A DNA stretch of 64,000 nucleotides, taken from IMG/VR virus record IMGVR_UViG_3300042455_001086, positions 1 to 64,000 of that record. One strand, 5' to 3'. Shown here in pieces: positions 41,911 through 55,412 of this stretch (its first letter is position 1; every line of letters begins with the position of its first letter). The notes beneath the pieces are model-generated. The model was not told the origin of the DNA and searched no databases. It was given only the letters and a program-made list of their open reading frames with translations. The position numbers and the translations under genes are program-made.

Positions 41911-42765
41911 AAAAAGCCTGAGATTACAGCTTGGTTTGAGAACCTTTTGAAGGATTATTTTTTCCCTTCGTATCCACCATCTTTTGAATGGTATTTCTCA
42001 GTGACGGTTTTTTAGGTATACCACTCCTTTAGGTTTGAATTACTCTCATCTTACTTGACTCTTTCCGAGGATGCCTCCCCAGTTCGTCCTTGCGGGATTA
42101 AAGGTTTTTCGGATAATTACACATCGACTTGGGATCTTTGTGTGCAATGAACGGCTCATTACTATGTAGTCACCTTTCATCCAAACCTGACGGACACTTT
42201 TCCTTTCTGTAGTTAATAATAGAATCATTACTTTCCATAAAGTATTTGTGTTGTGGATTGTGAAAGTAGTGGTCCGTCAACCAAGCCAACCCATCTTTTG
42301 AACGGATCGATACTTAACTACTCTCTGAAATGTCCCCATTTCCATATTTTTAGACTACTTCAAAACAATTCCCTTGGTAAGGAATAATTAGGGTTGGTAA
42401 CAGCACCATCTGTACACGAACATACCTTTCGGTTTTAAGTATCCTATTATATTGGAACACGCAATAATAAAATTGGATAATTCTATTTTTTGCAATATTC
42501 CTACGAGTTATTCCTATTGGTGTTCCCACCTCAAACTGACAACCCACATTGCCAGTTCATCTAACCACTTTCCCTACAGCGTTGCCCTCGGTACTAAAGG
42601 TTAAACGGTATCCCGCTTGTGTACTCAAGTTCAGTTACCCAAACCGCAAACCATTTACACGAATGATTCACTTTATCCCACTTTCGTGGTTTATTTTATG
42701 GACTATACACGGCCCAATATCTTTATCAGTTTCATTTCTTACTCCTGAAAGGATAATCTAATTTT
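41911..42765 (-). ncRNA. Large (~850 nt) structured ncRNA, probably GOLLD-class
   Basis: No credible ORF; GC richer than its surroundings; TAACTTTG promoter at 42803-42810 and boxA at 42766-42775; many hairpins; 3' hairpin plus U-run. Size and tRNA-proximal phage context fit GOLLD. Family assignment not verified. Confidence 0.65.
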
Positions 42766-45438: not shown

Positions 45439-45454
45439 AATATATAAATTTTAG

Positions 45455-45570
45455 ATGCCAGGGTGGGATTCGAACCCACATTTAGCAACCTTATAACTTC
45501 TCGCGTCCAAATTGCTCTTGGACCATGGTGTCTTTAGGACTTGGCACCGTGCCGCATTACGCTCCTGACA
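45455..45570 (-). ncRNA. tRNA-like RNA (acceptor and T-arm, non-canonical interior)
   Basis: TGTCAGG/CCTGGCA and GTGGGTTCGAATCCCAC; no standard anticodon arm. Confidence 0.6.
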
Positions 45571-45573
45571 AAC

Positions 45574-45652
45574 CAGGGTTGAGAAGACCTCAGTGTTGTA
45601 GTGGTTACTTGGTCCACTATTTCCGGCATTCCTTTCTCAAGGGAACAACACG
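45574..45652 (-). ncRNA. Structured RNA motif, copy 1
   Basis: 24-nt identity with 47967-47990; kissing loop UUGAG/CUCAA. Confidence 0.6.
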
Positions 45653-45789
45653 ACTCTTCAGCTTTCTACTCCCAGCACCGAGGAATTGTATCTAACTTAG
45701 CCCGTCTCACCGCTGTATGGGAACTGAAGTTCATCGTCTTTTTCTTACCGTAAAGATAAACAAAATAAATAATATAAACAATAATGGTG

Positions 45790-46200
45790 TCATAATTTAT
45801 CTGTATTTTCCAAAAGTTCTTTTGCAATCATAGATACTGTTTTATTATCAACAAGTCCTTTATAGTTTTTATTAAACTCACCCATAATCTGTCCGAGATT
45901 GGTCAATCCACTCATTATATATGTGGTAACCTTTTCACGGATTAGATTTTCACTCATCATTTGTGGTAAATATGGTTTAATATATTCCAATTCTTTTAAA
46001 GATTCCGGTGTATTAGTTTGTGTTAAAGATTTTTCCATTTTCTTTAATATACCTAATACCACATCATCAGATGCAATACCTGATCTTCCTTCTTCGTTTT
46101 GGATTTCACCCTTAACAACTCCAAGGAAGTTTTTCTTTTCCATTTCTTTGTTCTTAAATGCTGACATAAAATCGGCATTTATTTGTTCTTTTAATGTCAT
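45790..46200 (-). CDS. GatB/YqeY-domain protein
   Basis: MTLKEQINADFMSAFKNKE...YLPQMMSE...GQIMG. Confidence 0.85.
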   Translation of the reverse strand: MTLKEQINADFMSAFKNKEMEKKNFLGVVKGEIQNEEGRSGIASDDVVLGILKKMEKSLTQTNTPESLKELEYIKPYLPQMMSENLIREKVTTYIMSGLTNLGQIMGEFNKNYKGLVDNKTVSMIAKELLENTDKL

Positions 46201-46379
46201 AATTTTTTTAATTTAAAAAAAAGGTGGAGATTTGTAACCAACATATGATCACCCATATGTCTCGTTTCTTTTGTCTTAGGCACTCCACCATTGCAAGTTC
46301 TTCTTTGCTTGCGCCCCCATTCACGGATTTCCGATTTCCCAATGGGTTTTACCGTCCTATCGGAGTCAGGTAACCGCTG

Positions 46380-46480
46380 AAGTCAGGACCGGATTTGAAC
46401 CGGTATGTCATATATCTGGGCACCCATACGTTGCCCCATTTTGACACTTGTCGTTGCGTCTACCATTCCGCCACCTGACT
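46380..46480 (-). ncRNA. Leu-type tRNA shell with replaced anticodon arm
   Basis: AGTCAGGTGGCGGAATGGTAGACGC ... ACCGGTTCAAATCCGGTCCTGACT. Confidence 0.65.
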
Positions 46481-46589
46481 ATTTTATGATAGTATCATAA
46501 TTGTTATAGCTACACCCAGTACGATTACTGTAAGTAAAGCTACTGCCGCTCTAATAAATGTTTTGTCGTGTTCTTTCATAGTATATGTT

Positions 46590-46988
46590 TTATTCTGGTT
46601 TGTATGTTAAGATCAATGGTGTTCCATTCTCATCTAAAACATTGAAGAATCGTTTTTCTCTAGTGCCATCAAATTCACCAAACATTATTTTGTATACTTC
46701 ATCTTCGTATAGGAGAATGCTTATGTACATTGTTCGGGCTTCAGCTGGTTTCTTAAAGAATCCGAAATCAATGGGATTCACCATTATGTCGTAAACAAAT
46801 CCACTTGTATCAGCACCCAATTTATCAATTACCGTGTTGTATTTAATTATTGCCGCTCGCGGATTGGTGAATCTCATCTCATAGAGATCATATTCATTTT
46901 TCTTGAATCCGCTCATATTACGTAACTGAAACTGACCGATTACCGTACTGGTAACGAGCAAACTAAATGCTAAAATTAATTTTTTCAT
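46590..46988 (-). CDS. Secreted hypothetical protein
   Basis: Signal peptide. Confidence 0.65.
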   Translation of the reverse strand: MKKLILAFSLLVTSTVIGQFQLRNMSGFKKNEYDLYEMRFTNPRAAIIKYNTVIDKLGADTSGFVYDIMVNPIDFGFFKKPAEARTMYISILLYEDEVYKIMFGEFDGTREKRFFNVLDENGTPLILTYKPE

Positions 46989-47004
46989 ATAACTTTTATT
47001 TTTG

Positions 47005-47079
47005 CCGTCAGGAGTGGATTCGAACCACTTACCGATTCAGATTTGAGTACTGTCCGCTCTGCCATTGAGCTACCTGACT
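47005..47079 (-). ncRNA. Aberrant tRNA, anticodon unresolved
   Basis: Normal D and T arms; 3-bp anticodon stem with a 9-nt loop UACUCAAAU. Confidence 0.55.
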
Positions 47080-47088
47080 ATTGTTTTA

Positions 47089-47121
47089 CAAAGATATGTA
47101 TTTTATTTCAATCTACCAAAT
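47089..47121 (-). promoter_or_regulatory. Bacteroidota sigma70 promoter cassette (TTTG-N20-TATCTTTG); copies at 48455 and 48960, variants at 52485 and 54730
   Basis: caaagatatgtattttatttcaatctaccaaat is repeated. Other TAnnTTTG sites: 3199, 30721, 37403, 38489, 38966, 42803, 44273, 52858, 58447, 58861, 60671. Confidence 0.85.
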
Positions 47122-47331
47122 GTTTTTTTTAAAAATAAAAGGGGGAATTAAGGTGTTACCCCCTTTTTGTTTCTGTCGTTTGAAGTTTCGATTTTAGGTC
47201 TTGGAAACCCCATTCGGTAAAAAAAGAGACCGCAGTTTCTGGAAACTTACCTAACCCCAACATTTCTACCTTGTTACTTTAACGTCTCAACAATGGGACT
47301 CACTTGGGCGAGCATCAAAAAAGACGACCTG

Positions 47332-47417
47332 TAGTCAGGACCGGATTTGAACCGGTATTGTTGAATTACCCAGCTTCAACTGCTTAAGTATAGCGTCTAC
47401 CATTCCGCCACCTGACT
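47332..47417 (-). ncRNA. Leu-type tRNA shell with truncated anticodon arm
   Basis: Acceptor, D and T arms identical to 46380-46480; different interior. Confidence 0.65.
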
Positions 47418-47424
47418 ATTTTTT

Positions 47425-47664
47425 TTACTTAGATAATTCAAATTGATAAACACAACTTTGAATTCCCAATTCATTCTTCACCAAATAATCGTGTCTTCCA
47501 GTTTCAATTATTGTGACAGATTCACCTGGTGTAAATCCGGTGTTTTCGGTGTAACAAAAATGAATCTTACACTTTTCACCGATCTTAAATCGTTGTTGGA
47601 TTGGTGTTGAATAACCCCAATTATCGTCAACCAATTTTAATAATTTCCAAAGTAACTTTTTCAT
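47425..47664 (-). CDS. Hypothetical protein
   Basis: ORF track; start taken at MKKLLW, downstream of the tRNA-like element. Confidence 0.5.
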   Translation of the reverse strand: MKKLLWKLLKLVDDNWGYSTPIQQRFKIGEKCKIHFCYTENTGFTPGESVTIIETGRHDYLVKNELGIQSCVYQFELSK

Positions 47665-47680
47665 AATTTTAATTTTTTCG

Positions 47681-47799
47681 TAGTCAGTCAAGGAATCGAA
47701 CCTGTATTCAACCCAATCTCGATGTTGGCATTGTTATTCCCAGCGTCTACCAATCACAGTCAATCCAATTGACATATATGGCTATTCCGCCACCTGACT
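47681..47799 (-). ncRNA. Leu-type tRNA shell with ~30-nt D-loop insertion
   Basis: GGCGGAAT[insert hairpin]TGGTAGACGC; T-loop GGTTCGATTCC. Confidence 0.55.
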
Positions 47800-47899
47800 A
47801 AAAATAAGATTGATTTAGTGGACATATATAATCCCGCCTTGAGCAATTCGTTTCCACTAAGCTTTGACTTTACGGGCTTAGCTTTAAATCAATCTATAC

Positions 47900-47990
47900 G
47901 AGGTTGAGGTCCTCTATGTTGTAAGTTGCCTACCATAAATGGTATCCTTTATCGTCTACTCAAGCAATTCCTTTCTCAAGGGAACAACAC
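47900..47990 (-). ncRNA. Structured RNA motif, copy 2
   Basis: See copy 1 at 45574. Confidence 0.6.
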
Positions 47991-48153
47991 AATAATGTTG
48001 ATAGTGTTGGTGTACCCGCCTATTTCCAATCTTAACTGCCTTTTTAAGTTTTATGGTGCACCGGCAGTGGGCCATATCTATCCTTAACCTACGTAGTTTG
48101 TCGACAACTTCCGTAGAGGCGATCACTATCAATTTTTTCAAAGAACTTTCTTT

Positions 48154-48362: not shown

Positions 48363-48648
48363 GTTTAAGATGAGTCGTGGACTTGTGTACCACTTGTCCC
48401 CCTTTAAGTTTCTCACTAACCCCGGATGTAGGGAAACTCACCTTATTTGTCTTACAAAGATATGTATTTTATTTCAATCTACCAAATCTTTTTTTAATTT
48501 TTGTTGAGGATTAATCCTAAATTTTTTCTTTAAGGCCCTTAATAAATCAGTTTTTATGTTAGTTTTAACAAATTTAACCCTTCCTGATTCACAAGTCCCT
48601 GATAAAACTTCCTTCATCATTCATTGTTTTTAATTGTTTATTTTTTGA

Positions 48649-48725
48649 ACTACCCATAGGACTCGAACCTACAACCTTCGGGCCGAAGTAGACCCGTGTG
48701 CAAACCAAATTTACACCATAAGTAG
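48649..48725 (-). ncRNA. tRNA-like RNA with an 8-nt anticodon loop
   Basis: CGGGT-CTACTTCG-GCCCG; intact D and T arms. Confidence 0.6.
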
Positions 48726-48819
48726 TTACGCAAGAAGACAGACAGGAATTAGTGTCGACAAATTTCCTTAGGCTATATGACCCATCTTCTTGTTAGGTTC
48801 GGTTAATTACTCCGAACTT

Positions 48820-48978: not shown

Positions 48979-49776
48979 TCAATCTACCAAATATTTCTTA
49001 TCCCAATCTTCAATTTTTTTCAAAAGTTCATCAATTGTGATGTCTGATTTTTTATTTTTAGATATATTATCATTATGAATCATCAATCTACAATTTGCGG
49101 GATGAGATATGATTTTTGGATCAATATTATTTTTAAATCCTTCATTTACAGAATAAATATGATCCCTACTTATTCCACCTAAATTGTTACCCCTATTTTT
49201 AGGTTTATACCAACCATATTTCTCAATAAGAGAAAATTCAAATTCACTTGGGAAGTCGGACAAATTAAAATTAAATTTAGAGTCTTGTTTGTATTTGCAA
49301 TATTCCGTCATCAAATGTCTCTCATGTATCCTTCTACATTCAACGCAACAGAATTTATTGTTTCGTTTTTTAAAATTTAATGGTATATCACAATTACTAC
49401 ATTTACTTGGGTTTAATTTATAGTCGTTATACTCATCCAAAATACCTAATCTTTTAAAATTAGATTGGATTATATTTTGTTTACCTTCTTCGGACATATT
49501 ATATTTAAGTCCTTTTTTGTTTACCTGATTTATTACAGATTTACTACATTCTTTGGAACAATATAAATTAAGTCTATTTTCATAATCTATAAAATTTTCG
49601 CATTTTTTACATTTTTTAGGATTTTGTAAATATTTTTCCCTTGAGTTTTTTTTTAAACTTTCTCCTACTTTAGTGTAGTCTCTTAAATTTTTATTTACAT
49701 ATATATTTCTACAAGTTAAAGAACAATATGTATTTTTTTCTTTAATATCTTTACCACAATTTTTACAATTTTTCAT
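48979..49776 (-). CDS. Zn-finger HNH homing endonuclease in the tRNA cluster
   Basis: CxxC..YCS..C repeats; SRDHIYSV..HPANC..N..K. Confidence 0.8.
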   Translation of the reverse strand: MKNCKNCGKDIKEKNTYCSLTCRNIYVNKNLRDYTKVGESLKKNSREKYLQNPKKCKKCENFIDYENRLNLYCSKECSKSVINQVNKKGLKYNMSEEGKQNIIQSNFKRLGILDEYNDYKLNPSKCSNCDIPLNFKKRNNKFCCVECRRIHERHLMTEYCKYKQDSKFNFNLSDFPSEFEFSLIEKYGWYKPKNRGNNLGGISRDHIYSVNEGFKNNIDPKIISHPANCRLMIHNDNISKNKKSDITIDELLKKIEDWDKKYLVD

Positions 49777-49828
49777 ATAAGTATTTATATATAAATATCT
49801 GAATTTGTGGAAAAAGTGAATAACGAAG

Positions 49829-49905
49829 TGGAGGAGGTGGGACTCGAACCCACATAAAACCCTCTCGTTGCAAACGAGCCGCTCAGCCAATTGAGCTACA
49901 CCCCC
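49829..49905 (-). tRNA. tRNA-Ala(UGC)
   Basis: G3.U70; CTCG-TTTGCAA-CGAG. Confidence 0.88.
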
Positions 49906-50488: not shown

Positions 50489-51115
50489 TTATTTTTTTCT
50501 TCTGTAAACCTCACCTTTATAGTGTTTATCAACAAATCTTTTTACTTGTGAATGTGTTAAACCTAAAATATCAGATACTTTTTTTACCCACCCATACGTT
50601 GTCATATCAACACCTTTAATTAAATCTAACCTTTCACTAACAATATCTTCAGTCAATTTATTAAAACCACCGAATTTATCACCCATTTTTTTTGCATTAT
50701 TAATTCTAAATTCTAAAGGTACCGATTCCCAAGTTTTTTTTCTTTTTTCTTTGTTATCCCACGAGCCGGCAATACTTCCATATTTTAATCCGTGTAACCG
50801 TCTTTTTTCTTCTGTCCAATAATTTTTATTTACATGATCAAAAGAACCTAAACCACCCAAAGAAATGTTATATGTGTTTTTATTAGTTACAAAACTTTCA
50901 TTAACTATTTCACTTTCCATCTGAAACATTTGTGTTGGGTTGTCGAATATTGCTAAATATTTTTTATCAAAGTTATTAATCCCGTATTTTTTAATAGCAT
51001 CTTTTATGTTTTTTCCAGAACCCATATACCCATCGTTAATATTATCAGTTTTATGTACACCAACATAAATCTTACCATTAACTTTATTTCTTATTTCATA
51101 AACTATGTATTTCAT
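50489..51115 (-). CDS. GIY-YIG homing endonuclease (Seg-like)
   Basis: YIVYEIRNKVNGKIYVGVH...YMGSG...E...YNISLGG. Confidence 0.88.
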   Translation of the reverse strand: MKYIVYEIRNKVNGKIYVGVHKTDNINDGYMGSGKNIKDAIKKYGINNFDKKYLAIFDNPTQMFQMESEIVNESFVTNKNTYNISLGGLGSFDHVNKNYWTEEKRRLHGLKYGSIAGSWDNKEKRKKTWESVPLEFRINNAKKMGDKFGGFNKLTEDIVSERLDLIKGVDMTTYGWVKKVSDILGLTHSQVKRFVDKHYKGEVYRRKK

Positions 51116-54956: not shown

Positions 54957-55412
54957 TTAACGGCAGTGGTGATCTGCCGCTCTTGTTGCAATTTGATTAT
55001 GGGGTTTTATATTTGTTTTATACCCCAATGACATTGCCCATCCTGTTGCCGGTTGAACCAACTTTGAACTAAAATGTTTATCATCACTATTATAATCCAA
55101 ATCTATTTCAACTTTAACACTAACTTTTTGTGTTAGCCATTCAGCAACTTCAATTGAATAATCGGCCTCATTCCATAATCGTGTCCATTTGTCTTTTACT
55201 TTTTTCACTTTTTGTTTGTGGTAAATATAGTGGACACCTCTATTACCATACCTATATGCTATTGCAGTTACATAAACAGTACTTCTTCTATGATTTTGAG
55301 AATCAGTTCCTATGTGAACCTCAGCCCAGGGACAATCTTTAAGAATGTCTATTGTATGTTTTACAATGTCTGACACAGGTTCACCAGTGACTTTTCTGAA
55401 TACTCTGTTCAT
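54957..55412 (-). CDS. RNase H-like YkuK (DUF458) family protein
   Basis: IGTDSQ..YVTAI..RL..E...S...IDLD.N...A..AAD. Confidence 0.8.
   Translation of the reverse strand: MNRVFRKVTGEPVSDIVKHTIDILKDCPWAEVHIGTDSQNHRRSTVYVTAIAYRYGNRGVHYIYHKQKVKKVKDKWTRLWNEADYSIEVAEWLTQKVSVKVEIDLDYNSDDKHFSSKLVQPATGWAMSLGYKTNIKPHNQIATRAADHHCR

Follow-up and report, generated by a model that had tools for sequence, protein, structure and literature searches.

A predicted kissing-loop RNA of previously uncatalogued type in the tRNA arrays of uncultured phages

Phage tRNA islands harbor enigmatic RNAs, such as GOLLD, ROOL and the species 1 and 2 RNAs of phage T4, whose functions remain open. The T4 species (rnaC/rnaD) are small stable RNAs encoded among the phage tRNA genes, co-transcribed and matured with them. 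GOLLD and ROOL are ornate phage RNAs of 400-800 nt located next to tRNA islands, built around pseudoknots and kissing loops and forming homo-oligomeric cages (PMC12286853). Theta, or minimal HDV-like, ribozymes are small pseudoknotted RNAs starting with G1 of P1, which lie 3' of phage tRNA genes, within 5 nt of them, and have been proposed to free the 3' end of the upstream tRNA (PMC10879173). Among RNAs outside the phage arrays, loop-loop contacts fix the geometry of the three-way junctions of the purine riboswitch and the hammerhead ribozyme, and kissing complexes of 7 nt are formed by ColE1 RNA I/RNA II. Here we describe a small RNA family which resembles each of these systems in part, and which matched no Rfam 15 family.

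The initial annotation of the window (i.e., the whole analyzed stretch of 64,000 nt from the virus record IMGVR_UViG_3300042455_001086) pointed out two copies of an unknown RNA motif with a P1 helix, a variable middle arm and a 3' hairpin whose loop complements an upstream loop. This observation was confirmed. The strand, which had not been specified, is the minus one, the same as that of all 24 tRNA genes, and the copies (45651->45575 and 47990->47900) lie at the downstream end of the 24-tRNA array of a 257-kb freshwater jumbo phage. The 24-nt string GTGTTGTTCCCTTGAGAAAGGAAT occurs exactly twice in the window, at 45628-45651 and 47967-47990 (both on the minus strand), as well as exactly twice in the whole 257,166-bp record, while none of 100 dinucleotide-preserving shuffles gave a match even with 3 mismatches allowed. 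A covariance model built from 38 homologues recognized copy 1 (hit 45567-45655, 64.4 bits, E 8e-11) and copy 2 (hit 47892-47994, 68.2 bits, E 1.3e-11), whereas the next best hit in the window reached only 15.6 bits (E 0.7).

In copy 1 (45575-45651, minus strand throughout), the P1 5' strand GUGUUG (45646-45651) pairs with CAACAC (45593-45598), and the helix can be extended by one U-A pair; it encloses the P2 hairpin UUCC-CUUGAGAAA-GGAA (45629-45645, with the loop L2 at 45633-45641) and the segment 45599-45628, comprising the J2/3 linker and the variable P3 hairpin (GUGG...CCAC at 45601-45617). The 3' hairpin P4 (45575-45591) carries the loop L4 (45579-45587) containing the sequence UUCUCAA, which is complementary to L2 over 7 nt (-7.4 kcal/mol), although its stem (AGG/CCU, with one non-standard pair flagged by the covariance model) is weaker here than the family consensus. 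Copy 2 (47900-47990, minus strand) consists of the P1 5' strand GUGUUG (47985-47990) paired with CAACAU (47916-47921) via a terminal G-U pair and likewise extendable by one U-A pair, the P2 hairpin (47968-47984, L2 at 47972-47980), the J2/3 linker with the P3 arm (47922-47967), and the 3' hairpin GAGG-ACCUCAA-CCUC (47900-47914, L4 at 47904-47910), in which CUCAA gives 5 bp with L2 (-4.5 kcal/mol). The middle arms of the two copies (28 and 44 nt, respectively) differ completely; an arm class related to that of copy 2, with internal hairpin changes, occurs in the homologous locus L075 (homologous loci are hereafter designated by L with a number). Minimum free energy folding alone recovered P1, the middle arm and the 3' hairpin and paired P2 in a shifted register (CCCU/AGGG), but was not significant against shuffles (z +0.44 and -1.21), nor was thermodynamic significance found for any other single sequence folded. 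The support for the structure, therefore, comes from comparison rather than from thermodynamics.

The motif belongs to a large family. The exact P2 17-mer is shared with at least 120 loci in IMG/VR, nearly all of which carry the whole architecture, i.e., P1 (GUGUUG/CAACAC), P2 (UUCC/GGAA) with the loop CUUGAGAAA, an A-rich linker, a variable hairpin and a 3' hairpin whose loop (UUCUCA) pairs with the P2 loop; covariance model searches gave 111 and 28 hits, and the unit was found in more than 130 otherwise unrelated phage contigs. The arm differs in every lineage, with 96 clusters among 131 instances and a hairpin of 20-110 nt closing 0-1 nt before the P1 3' strand, whereas about 45 nucleotides of the core are nearly invariant. 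Across 100 distinct homologues P1 is 99.3% paired, 98% of cells are paired overall, and 0 of 500 shuffles reached the observed covariation measures, although it should be taken into account that the set was seeded by an exact 17-mer. Compensatory variants were revealed in P1 (GUGUUC/GAACAC, GCGUUG/CAACGC), in P2 (CUCC/GGAG in L112) and in the 3' stem (AAGG/CCUU, GAAG/CUUC, GGUG/CACC). The absence of covariation in the loop-loop pairing had been named beforehand as the condition refuting the model, and such covariation was found in rare variants: the loop UUUGGAA pairs with UUCCAAG in L125, L143, L148, L161 and L163, which have differing arms, and UUUAGAA pairs with UUCUAGG in L123 and L159, the cognate duplexes being more stable than the crossed ones. 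Two variants lacking the 3' hairpin (L149, L154) also have a drifted P2 loop. On the other hand, L145, L152, L142 and L100 carry uncompensated loop changes, and L105, where two pairs change on both sides, was not counted as kissing-loop covariation in the short form, since its cognate duplex is weak (-1.6 kcal/mol) and no better than the crossed ones. A second, long form of the family embeds the same core in an RNA of roughly 300 nt.

No Rfam 15 model (of 4227) gave a hit overlapping either copy at the gathering score, or at E<=10 on a 3-kb slice; a canonical homologue scanned alone (116 nt) yielded only noise (snoU49 at 11.9 bits and STAXI at 7.6 bits), the long form (401 nt) yielded nothing, and the other Rfam scans performed gave no match to the motif either. 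The GOLLD model RF02032 matches only 41915-42325, 3 kb away in the same window; in contrast to GOLLD and ROOL, the present motif is of about 90 nt, and its loops can pair within one molecule. Neither ARAGORN nor RF00005 recognizes the units as tRNAs; only their neighbors are tRNAs. BLAST against 50,697 records of cultured phages returned a single 20-nt hit in Pseudoalteromonas phage HM1, located in coding-looking sequence without P1 or a 3' hairpin and, hence, regarded as a chance one, so that no cultured phage in this set carries the motif, and only 8 MAG contigs do. Full-text literature searches revealed no description of the motif, although an anonymous entry in the catalogue of 10,006 viral candidate RNAs (PMC10690425) cannot be excluded. 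No sequence or structural relation to the T4 species 1 and 2 RNAs is apparent, the family having its own invariant core and kissing loop.

The genomic context, which had escaped the initial annotation, is that of a tRNA-sized unit within tRNA arrays. Within 3 kb of the units 466 tRNAs lie on the same strand and 2 on the opposite one; about 39 of 63 units are followed within roughly 8 nt by a tRNA or a tRNA-Leu-like 5' end, and in several loci tRNA 3' ends lie 3-4 nt upstream. Directly downstream of copy 1, 4 nt after the 3' hairpin, starts a 117-nt tRNA-Cys-like RNA (45454-45570, minus strand), which ARAGORN calls as 45454-45546 and in which the full acceptor stem and T arm fold. The spacers of the motif (-3 A 75%, -1 U 70%, or 86% in the long form, +1 G 99%, and AA after the 3' hairpin in 89%) match those of the 492 tRNAs of the same loci (-4 A 70%, -1 U 67%, +1 G 66%, with A-rich trailers and no CCA). 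Contigs of metatranscriptome runs covering the non-coding modules of this stretch had depths of about 14-400, against 0-4 over the ORFs, but these contigs, which show neither RNA ends nor strand, originated largely from relatives, some of them lacking copy 1.

Taken together, these results support the structural part of the initial interpretation, and its proposal of a functional RNA is strongly supported by the conservation of the unit, whereas the choice it offered between a ribozyme, an aptamer and a protein sponge is not settled by the computations, so that the interpretation is supported only in part. We consider the two repeats to be genes for a phage-specific small structured RNA of about 75-160 nt, in which a three-way junction joins P1 (6-7 bp), P2 (4 bp with a 9-nt loop) and the variable P3 hairpin, preceded by an A-rich linker of roughly 9-14 nt, while the 3' hairpin follows P1 after one nucleotide and its loop forms a kissing helix of 5-7 bp with the P2 loop, clamping the junction. 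In our tentative view, the unit would be transcribed with the tRNAs and released as a discrete, compact RNA by the host tRNA-maturation enzymes, RNase P cutting at the 5' end of the next unit and possibly at the motif's own U(-1)/G(+1) site, and RNase Z or exonucleases trimming the short A-rich trailers. Considering that the primary sequence of P1, P2 and both loops is almost invariant, while the arm varies freely and the neighboring genes are unrelated, we assume that the clamped core may be a sequence-specific binding surface for a conserved partner, either a protein or RNA of the translation or tRNA-processing machinery or a tRNA-directed host defence factor, the RNA acting in trans as a decoy, sponge or cofactor. 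Of these statements, the fold, the family, the array context and the spacer signature are established by our analysis, whereas the release by RNase P, the stability and the binding role are inferred from sequence and context without observed RNA ends, abundance or partner, and any self-cleavage (see below) would likewise be an inference. Moreover, the resemblance of the spacers could reflect array composition rather than shared processing; RNase P normally wants a free 3' strand after the acceptor-like helix, whereas here a hairpin follows after one nucleotide, and in the long form a hairpin sits 2 nt upstream of G1, which fits poorly with cleavage at that site. The near-invariant stems could also result from frequent horizontal spread of a cassette, and no candidate partner gene co-occurs consistently: no protein family is present in more than 13 of 120 loci, a YkuK-type RNase H-like protein (12 loci, also inside this array) and a cREC domain protein (7 loci) being only leads.

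Less likely, the unit could be a new class of self-cleaving ribozyme, cutting at the U(-1)/G1 boundary, as HDV-like and hatchet ribozymes do, or at its 3' edge, thereby separating units of the array and freeing the 3' end of the upstream tRNA. Its compact pseudoknotted fold with a dispensable arm, the 99% conserved G1 preceded by U, the tRNA 3' ends 3-4 nt upstream in several loci and the presence of the cyclic-phosphate-processing cREC domain protein in 7 loci and in this genome agree with such a role, and the order P1a < L2 < P1b < L4 means that P1 and the loop-loop helix cross as P1 and P2 do in HDV-like ribozymes. This similarity is, however, of topology only: the nucleotides before the pseudoknot strand vary (AC, AU, A or none), so that there is no conserved C between the 3' stem and this strand comparable to the catalytic C of J4/2, the place of the 3-bp P3 with its conserved L3 is occupied by the variable hairpin, P1.1 is absent, and G1 pairs with C (in 96 of 100 sequences) rather than U. 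A hammerhead is not supported either, as the junction strands are of 0, about 9-14 and 0-1 nt instead of 7/3/1, the core motifs (CUGANGA, GAAA, UH) are absent from the unit and no RF00008/RF00163 hit was found. Adjacent tRNAs of the same arrays use identical spacers without any ribozyme, so that none is needed, only 2 copies serve 24 tRNAs here, G1 of the long form lies in the middle of a larger conserved RNA, invariant helices are unusual for small ribozymes, no ribozyme family matches even at E<=10 on short slices, and no known ribozymes occur nearby. Equally unlikely appears a cis-acting 5' leader guiding folding or RNase P cleavage of the unusual downstream unit, mostly a tRNA-Leu-like scaffold with odd inserts, and having no role after removal. 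It is favored by the tight and conserved spacing to the next 5' end (1-6 nt), by two variants lacking the 3' hairpin which are still fused directly to a tRNA, and by the fact that about 44% of followers start with GUCAGGUGGCGG-type tRNA-Leu-like sequence (many scoring poorly as tRNAs), a roughly four-fold enrichment over our estimate of about 11% of array units; yet copy 2 and about a third of family members are followed by non-tRNA modules or other sequence, the long form is usually not next to a tRNA, the spacer after the motif is the ordinary inter-tRNA one, and the loops are invariant while the downstream units vary.

A ligand-binding aptamer, in which a small molecule or ion would bind at the junction and the kissing loops would lock the bound state as in the purine riboswitch, modulating processing or stability of the array, seems improbable. 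The junction organized by a loop-loop contact, the invariant helices adjacent to it, the long purine-rich linker and the freely varying peripheral hairpin speak for it, but there is no expression platform, terminator or downstream ORF (tRNAs follow instead), no riboswitch family matches, and the linker sequence itself is poorly conserved. In contrast to the known loop-loop organized junctions, the second hairpin here lies outside P1, so that the fold is a pseudoknot. Similarly improbable is a selfish or passively hitch-hiking DNA/RNA cassette spreading between phage tRNA arrays by recombination, possibly with the help of the homing endonucleases there, and benefiting no one; GIY-YIG and HNH endonuclease genes lie inside this array. 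Copy 1 is indeed a clean 76-nt presence/absence difference between relatives, RNA-run contigs of close relatives match copy 2 up to 47967 and then diverge abruptly right after the 24-nt core, and the core is identical in phages with unrelated neighboring genes; however, compensatory changes and G-U pairs show selection on the RNA fold of one strand, the divergence of the arms into 96 classes around a fixed core indicates long purifying selection rather than recent spread, and there are no terminal repeats, no target duplication and no associated transposase or reverse transcriptase. The boldest possibility, unlikely but not excluded, is that the clamped core represents a new catalytic or ligand-sensing RNA class, for example a ribozyme cutting at U(-1)/G1 and maturing phage tRNA arrays independently of host enzymes, with the long form as its elaborated relative.

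Two further ideas were rejected. The variable arms of both copies fold on themselves and have no antisense match in the 257-kb genome beyond a chance 12-mer, which does not support guide RNAs, while a promoter was ruled out from the sequence, as no consistent -10 element lies at a fixed distance from the loop TTGAGA and helices with G-U pairs are not expected of a promoter. The family is small enough to be studied easily and is more conserved in sequence than almost anything else in the genomes carrying it, pointing to a strong and general selective pressure. Identification of its partner or chemistry could show how phages manage, protect or exploit their own tRNA supply, and could add a compact kissing-loop module to the RNA structure repertoire. 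The family is widespread, appearing in freshwater samples, with hits also bearing TARA (marine) and activated-sludge labels, and in genomes ranging from contig fragments to complete jumbo phages of 270-362 kb. In the window analyzed it also marks a whole island of further uncatalogued RNA modules.

The window is the first 64 kb of a 257,166-bp IMG/VR virus record, which possesses inverted terminal repeats and a G+C content of 30% and encodes 24 tRNA genes recognized by ARAGORN, and all of them are located at 45.4-61.1 kb on the minus strand. A full-length match to the GOLLD RNA 3' domain (41915-42325, minus strand, 321.6 bits) and a phage tmRNA (38524-38914, plus strand, 110.2 bits) lie next to this tRNA island. 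The 24-nt string on which the initial annotation was based occurs exactly twice, at 45628-45651 and 47967-47990, both on the minus strand; none of the shuffled sequences gave a match, and no further copies were found in the genome. Reading of the minus strand confirmed every element that had been described for the two copies: a P1 helix of GUGUUG with CAACAC or CAACAU, a UUCC/GGAA hairpin (P2) with a 9-nt loop (L2), CUUGAGAAA, a middle arm that is unrelated between the two copies, and, one nucleotide after P1, a short hairpin whose loop (L4) is complementary to L2 over 7 nt in copy 1 and 5 nt in copy 2. Since the folding energies of the single sequences were not better than those of shuffled ones, the case rests on the comparison with other sequences.

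An exact scan of IMG/VR with the 17-mer comprising P2 and its loop retrieved at least 120 loci (designated below by L and a number). In all but about three of the 134 matches, the flanks carry GUGUUG directly upstream, a variable arm, CAACAC, and a downstream partner for L2. A covariance model built from 38 of these sequences found only the two copies in the window, at 68 and 64 bits, with the next hit at 15.6 bits, while in the retrieved loci the same model gave 111 and 28 hits, including a few that lack the exact 17-mer. The copy number is 1-4 per phage record, with complete 270-kb and 362-kb genomes having one copy each. The motif is absent from 50,697 GenBank phage records, the single 20-nt hit being a chance match, and among 185,579 prokaryotic species genomes it occurs on only 8 MAG contigs assigned to unrelated phyla, which we take for phage contigs binned by mistake. 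Sequencing runs containing this phage come from lake water and freshwater, and variant hits also come from records labelled TARA (marine) and activated sludge.

Two forms of the RNA were distinguished. The short form, to which both copies in the window belong, comprises 73 clear cases and most of 12 instances left unclassified by our rule, i.e., 85 non-long instances in all; it ends in a 4-bp hairpin, usually GAGG/CCUC, that presents UUCUCA and is followed by AA. The long form comprises 46 instances (L004, L006, L009, L012, L057, L082 and about 40 other loci, e.g., L082:860-1170) and embeds the same P1, P2 and arm in a conserved RNA of roughly 300 nt, with a 5' hairpin domain, a hairpin with the loop AGUAAU 2 nt before G1, and the partner strand UUCUCAG followed by a multi-stem 3' domain (GACCCUAC ... 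GAGGGUGCUAA). No Rfam family matched the long form, which in several loci lies about 60-260 nt upstream of a phage tmRNA. Some arm classes occur in both forms.

In the model-fitted alignment of 100 distinct sequences, 98% of cells form standard pairs and six of 14 pairs show double changes; none of 500 shuffles reached the observed values, and sliding the partners destroyed the pairing. As this set was seeded by an exact 17-mer, P2 and L2 are invariant in it by construction. Searches aimed at variants revealed compensatory changes in P2 (CUCC/GGAG in L112), in P1 (GUGUUC/GAACAC in L047 and GCGUUG/CAACGC in L090 and L105) and in the 3' stem (AAGG/CCUU, GAAG/CUUC, AAGGG/CCCUU and GGUG/CACC). For the loop-loop helix, scanning of IMG/VR and metagenomes for L2 variants showed that L2 changes are rare, but two compensated haplotypes exist. 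UUUGGAA pairs with UUCCAAG in L125, L143, L148, L161 and L163, the arms of which differ except for L125 and L161, which share one; here two pairs change on both sides and 7 of 7 bp are kept. UUUAGAA pairs with UUCUAGG in L123 and L159. Cognate duplexes are more stable than crossed ones (-6.6 against -4.5 and -1.9 kcal/mol). Uncompensated intermediates also exist (L145, L152, L142 and L100), and two variants with a drifted L2 (L149 and L154) have lost the 3' hairpin altogether, being P1/P2/arm units fused directly to a tRNA, while a partial version of another kind, a 3' hairpin with the UUCUCA loop alone, lies upstream of a tRNA in L121 (13601-13686). The lack of covariation in the loop-loop pairing, named beforehand as the outcome that would refute the proposed motif, was therefore not observed. 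It should be considered, however, that the clean compensations are in the long form, and that for the short form the helix is inferred from the identical L2 and the universally retained complementarity, whose core UCUC/GAGA is near-invariant. Beyond the structure initially proposed, the arm consists of a linker, which usually starts with U, is A-rich and is typically about 9-14 nt long, and of a hairpin that closes 0-1 nt before CAACAC. The arms fall into 96 sequence clusters among 131 instances and have no antisense targets in this genome; they look like a structurally tolerated peripheral stem rather than a guide.

Within 3 kb of the units, ARAGORN recognized 466 tRNAs on the same strand and 2 on the other, a tRNA being that close for 67 of 85 short-form units but only for 13 of 46 long-form units. 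In the short form, the next unit starts 1-6 nt after the hairpin and its AA. In about 39 of 63 distinct cases this unit is a tRNA or a tRNA-Leu-like scaffold beginning with GUCAGGUGGCGG, many of which are long, score poorly as tRNAs or are missed by ARAGORN, and in others it is one of two further recurrent non-tRNA modules. Upstream, tRNA 3' ends lie 3-4 nt before G1 in several loci. The spacers flanking the motif have the same statistics as those of 492 tRNAs from the same loci: an A-rich leader (A in 75% at position -3 of the motif and in 70% at position -4 of the tRNAs) with almost no G in either case, U at position -1 in 70% (86% in the long form) against 67%, G at position +1 in 99% against 66%, and a trailer with AA after the 3' hairpin in 89% of motifs against A-rich trailers without encoded CCA in the tRNAs. 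The unit thus occupies a slot in the array exactly as a tRNA does.

In this genome, copy 1 is followed after 4 nt by a 117-nt tRNA-Cys-like RNA with extra hairpins (45454-45570, minus strand), while copy 2 is followed by a hairpin-like module (47812-47890, minus strand) and then by an odd tRNA. Both copies are preceded by other conserved modules. Directly upstream of copy 1 lies a second uncatalogued RNA module (45655-45730, minus strand; CUUCAG ... CCCAUACAGCGG ... GGGCUAAGU ... CUGAAG), which recurs in 7 other loci with compensatory changes (CUUCGG/CCGAAG). Directly upstream of copy 2 lies a third module (47995-48140, minus strand), closed by UUGAUAGUG/CACUAUCAA, the 3' end of which (CUAUCAAC-AUAUU) precedes the motif in 11 loci. 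Other tRNA-like units of the array are unusual as well: at 46380-46480, 47680-47800 and 48647-48726 (minus strand) there are two AGUCAGGUGGCGG-type units with long internal inserts (one apparently in the D-loop region), which are called by neither ARAGORN nor Rfam, and one ARAGORN call with a 4-nt anticodon. Similar tRNA-Leu-like scaffolds with variable interiors are common in the related loci (72 in 51 loci). A further non-coding stretch between array units is found at 46210-46380 (minus strand); neither this stretch nor the hairpin-like module after copy 2 is significant by folding energy alone.

Metatranscriptome contigs that match the non-coding modules of 45.4-45.8 kb and 47.9-48.0 kb have depths of about 14-400, while contigs over the ORFs have 0-4, although contigs allow no claim on RNA ends, strand or levels. 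Contigs of relatives reach a depth of about 400 over the module upstream of copy 1 in one metatranscriptome run, and the stretch at 46210-46380 is covered at a depth of about 30. Contigs of relatives join 45573 to 45650 with one extra letter, and copy 1 is therefore a clean 76-nt presence/absence difference, whereas other relatives match perfectly up to the 24-nt core of copy 2 and then diverge. The island is thus mosaic, and the unit behaves as a cassette.

Neighboring proteins are unrelated across the loci, as no family occurs in more than 13 of 120 loci, yet about 45 nucleotides of the RNA are fixed, helices included. This points to readout of the sequence by a conserved partner or to chemistry, and not just to a scaffold. 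RNase P alone separates closely spaced bacterial tRNAs, prefers U(-1)/G(+1), and processes some phage non-tRNA RNAs. Considering this, and that the unit carries tRNA-type spacers, we take its release by the tRNA-maturation machinery as the most economical route. Our preferred, though tentative, explanation is a stable, trans-acting small RNA whose clamped core would bind a conserved component. The observation of two copies of one RNA motif holds, and its interpretation is supported only in part: the structural model, including the kissing loop, is supported by the comparative analysis, whereas the processing of the RNA, its stability, its action in trans and its binding of a partner are inferred.

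The alternatives appear less likely. A new self-cleaving ribozyme and a cis-acting leader for the odd downstream tRNA-like units are both possible but doubtful, and about equally so, while an aptamer and a selfish cassette are less probable still. The crossing topology of the fold is similar to that of HDV-like ribozymes, but the HDV-defining residues are absent and no ribozyme family was matched. It also argues against a ribozyme that there are only two copies for 24 tRNAs, that adjacent tRNAs use identical spacers without a ribozyme, and that in the long form G1 is internal to a larger RNA.

The closest known RNAs are the stable non-tRNA RNAs of the T4 tRNA cluster, the ornate GOLLD and ROOL RNAs of phage tRNA islands (PMC12286853), and the theta ribozymes that abut phage tRNAs (PMC10879173). 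The motif apparently belongs to none of them and represents a separate, new family among the orphan structured RNAs of phage tRNA islands, a kind of RNA already known; full-text literature searches found no description of it, although an unnamed entry in a bulk catalogue of viral candidate RNAs (PMC10690425) cannot be excluded. Protein genes also lie inside the tRNA array (54963-55322, 45790-46200, 48979-49890 and 50489-51115, all on the minus strand), namely those of a YkuK-type RNase H-like protein (PF04308), which also neighbors the motif in 12 other loci, of a YqeY-like protein between the two copies, and of an HNH-like and a GIY-YIG homing endonuclease. A cyclic-phosphate-processing cREC domain protein is encoded elsewhere in the genome (135720-136097 of the record, minus strand) and in 7 related loci.
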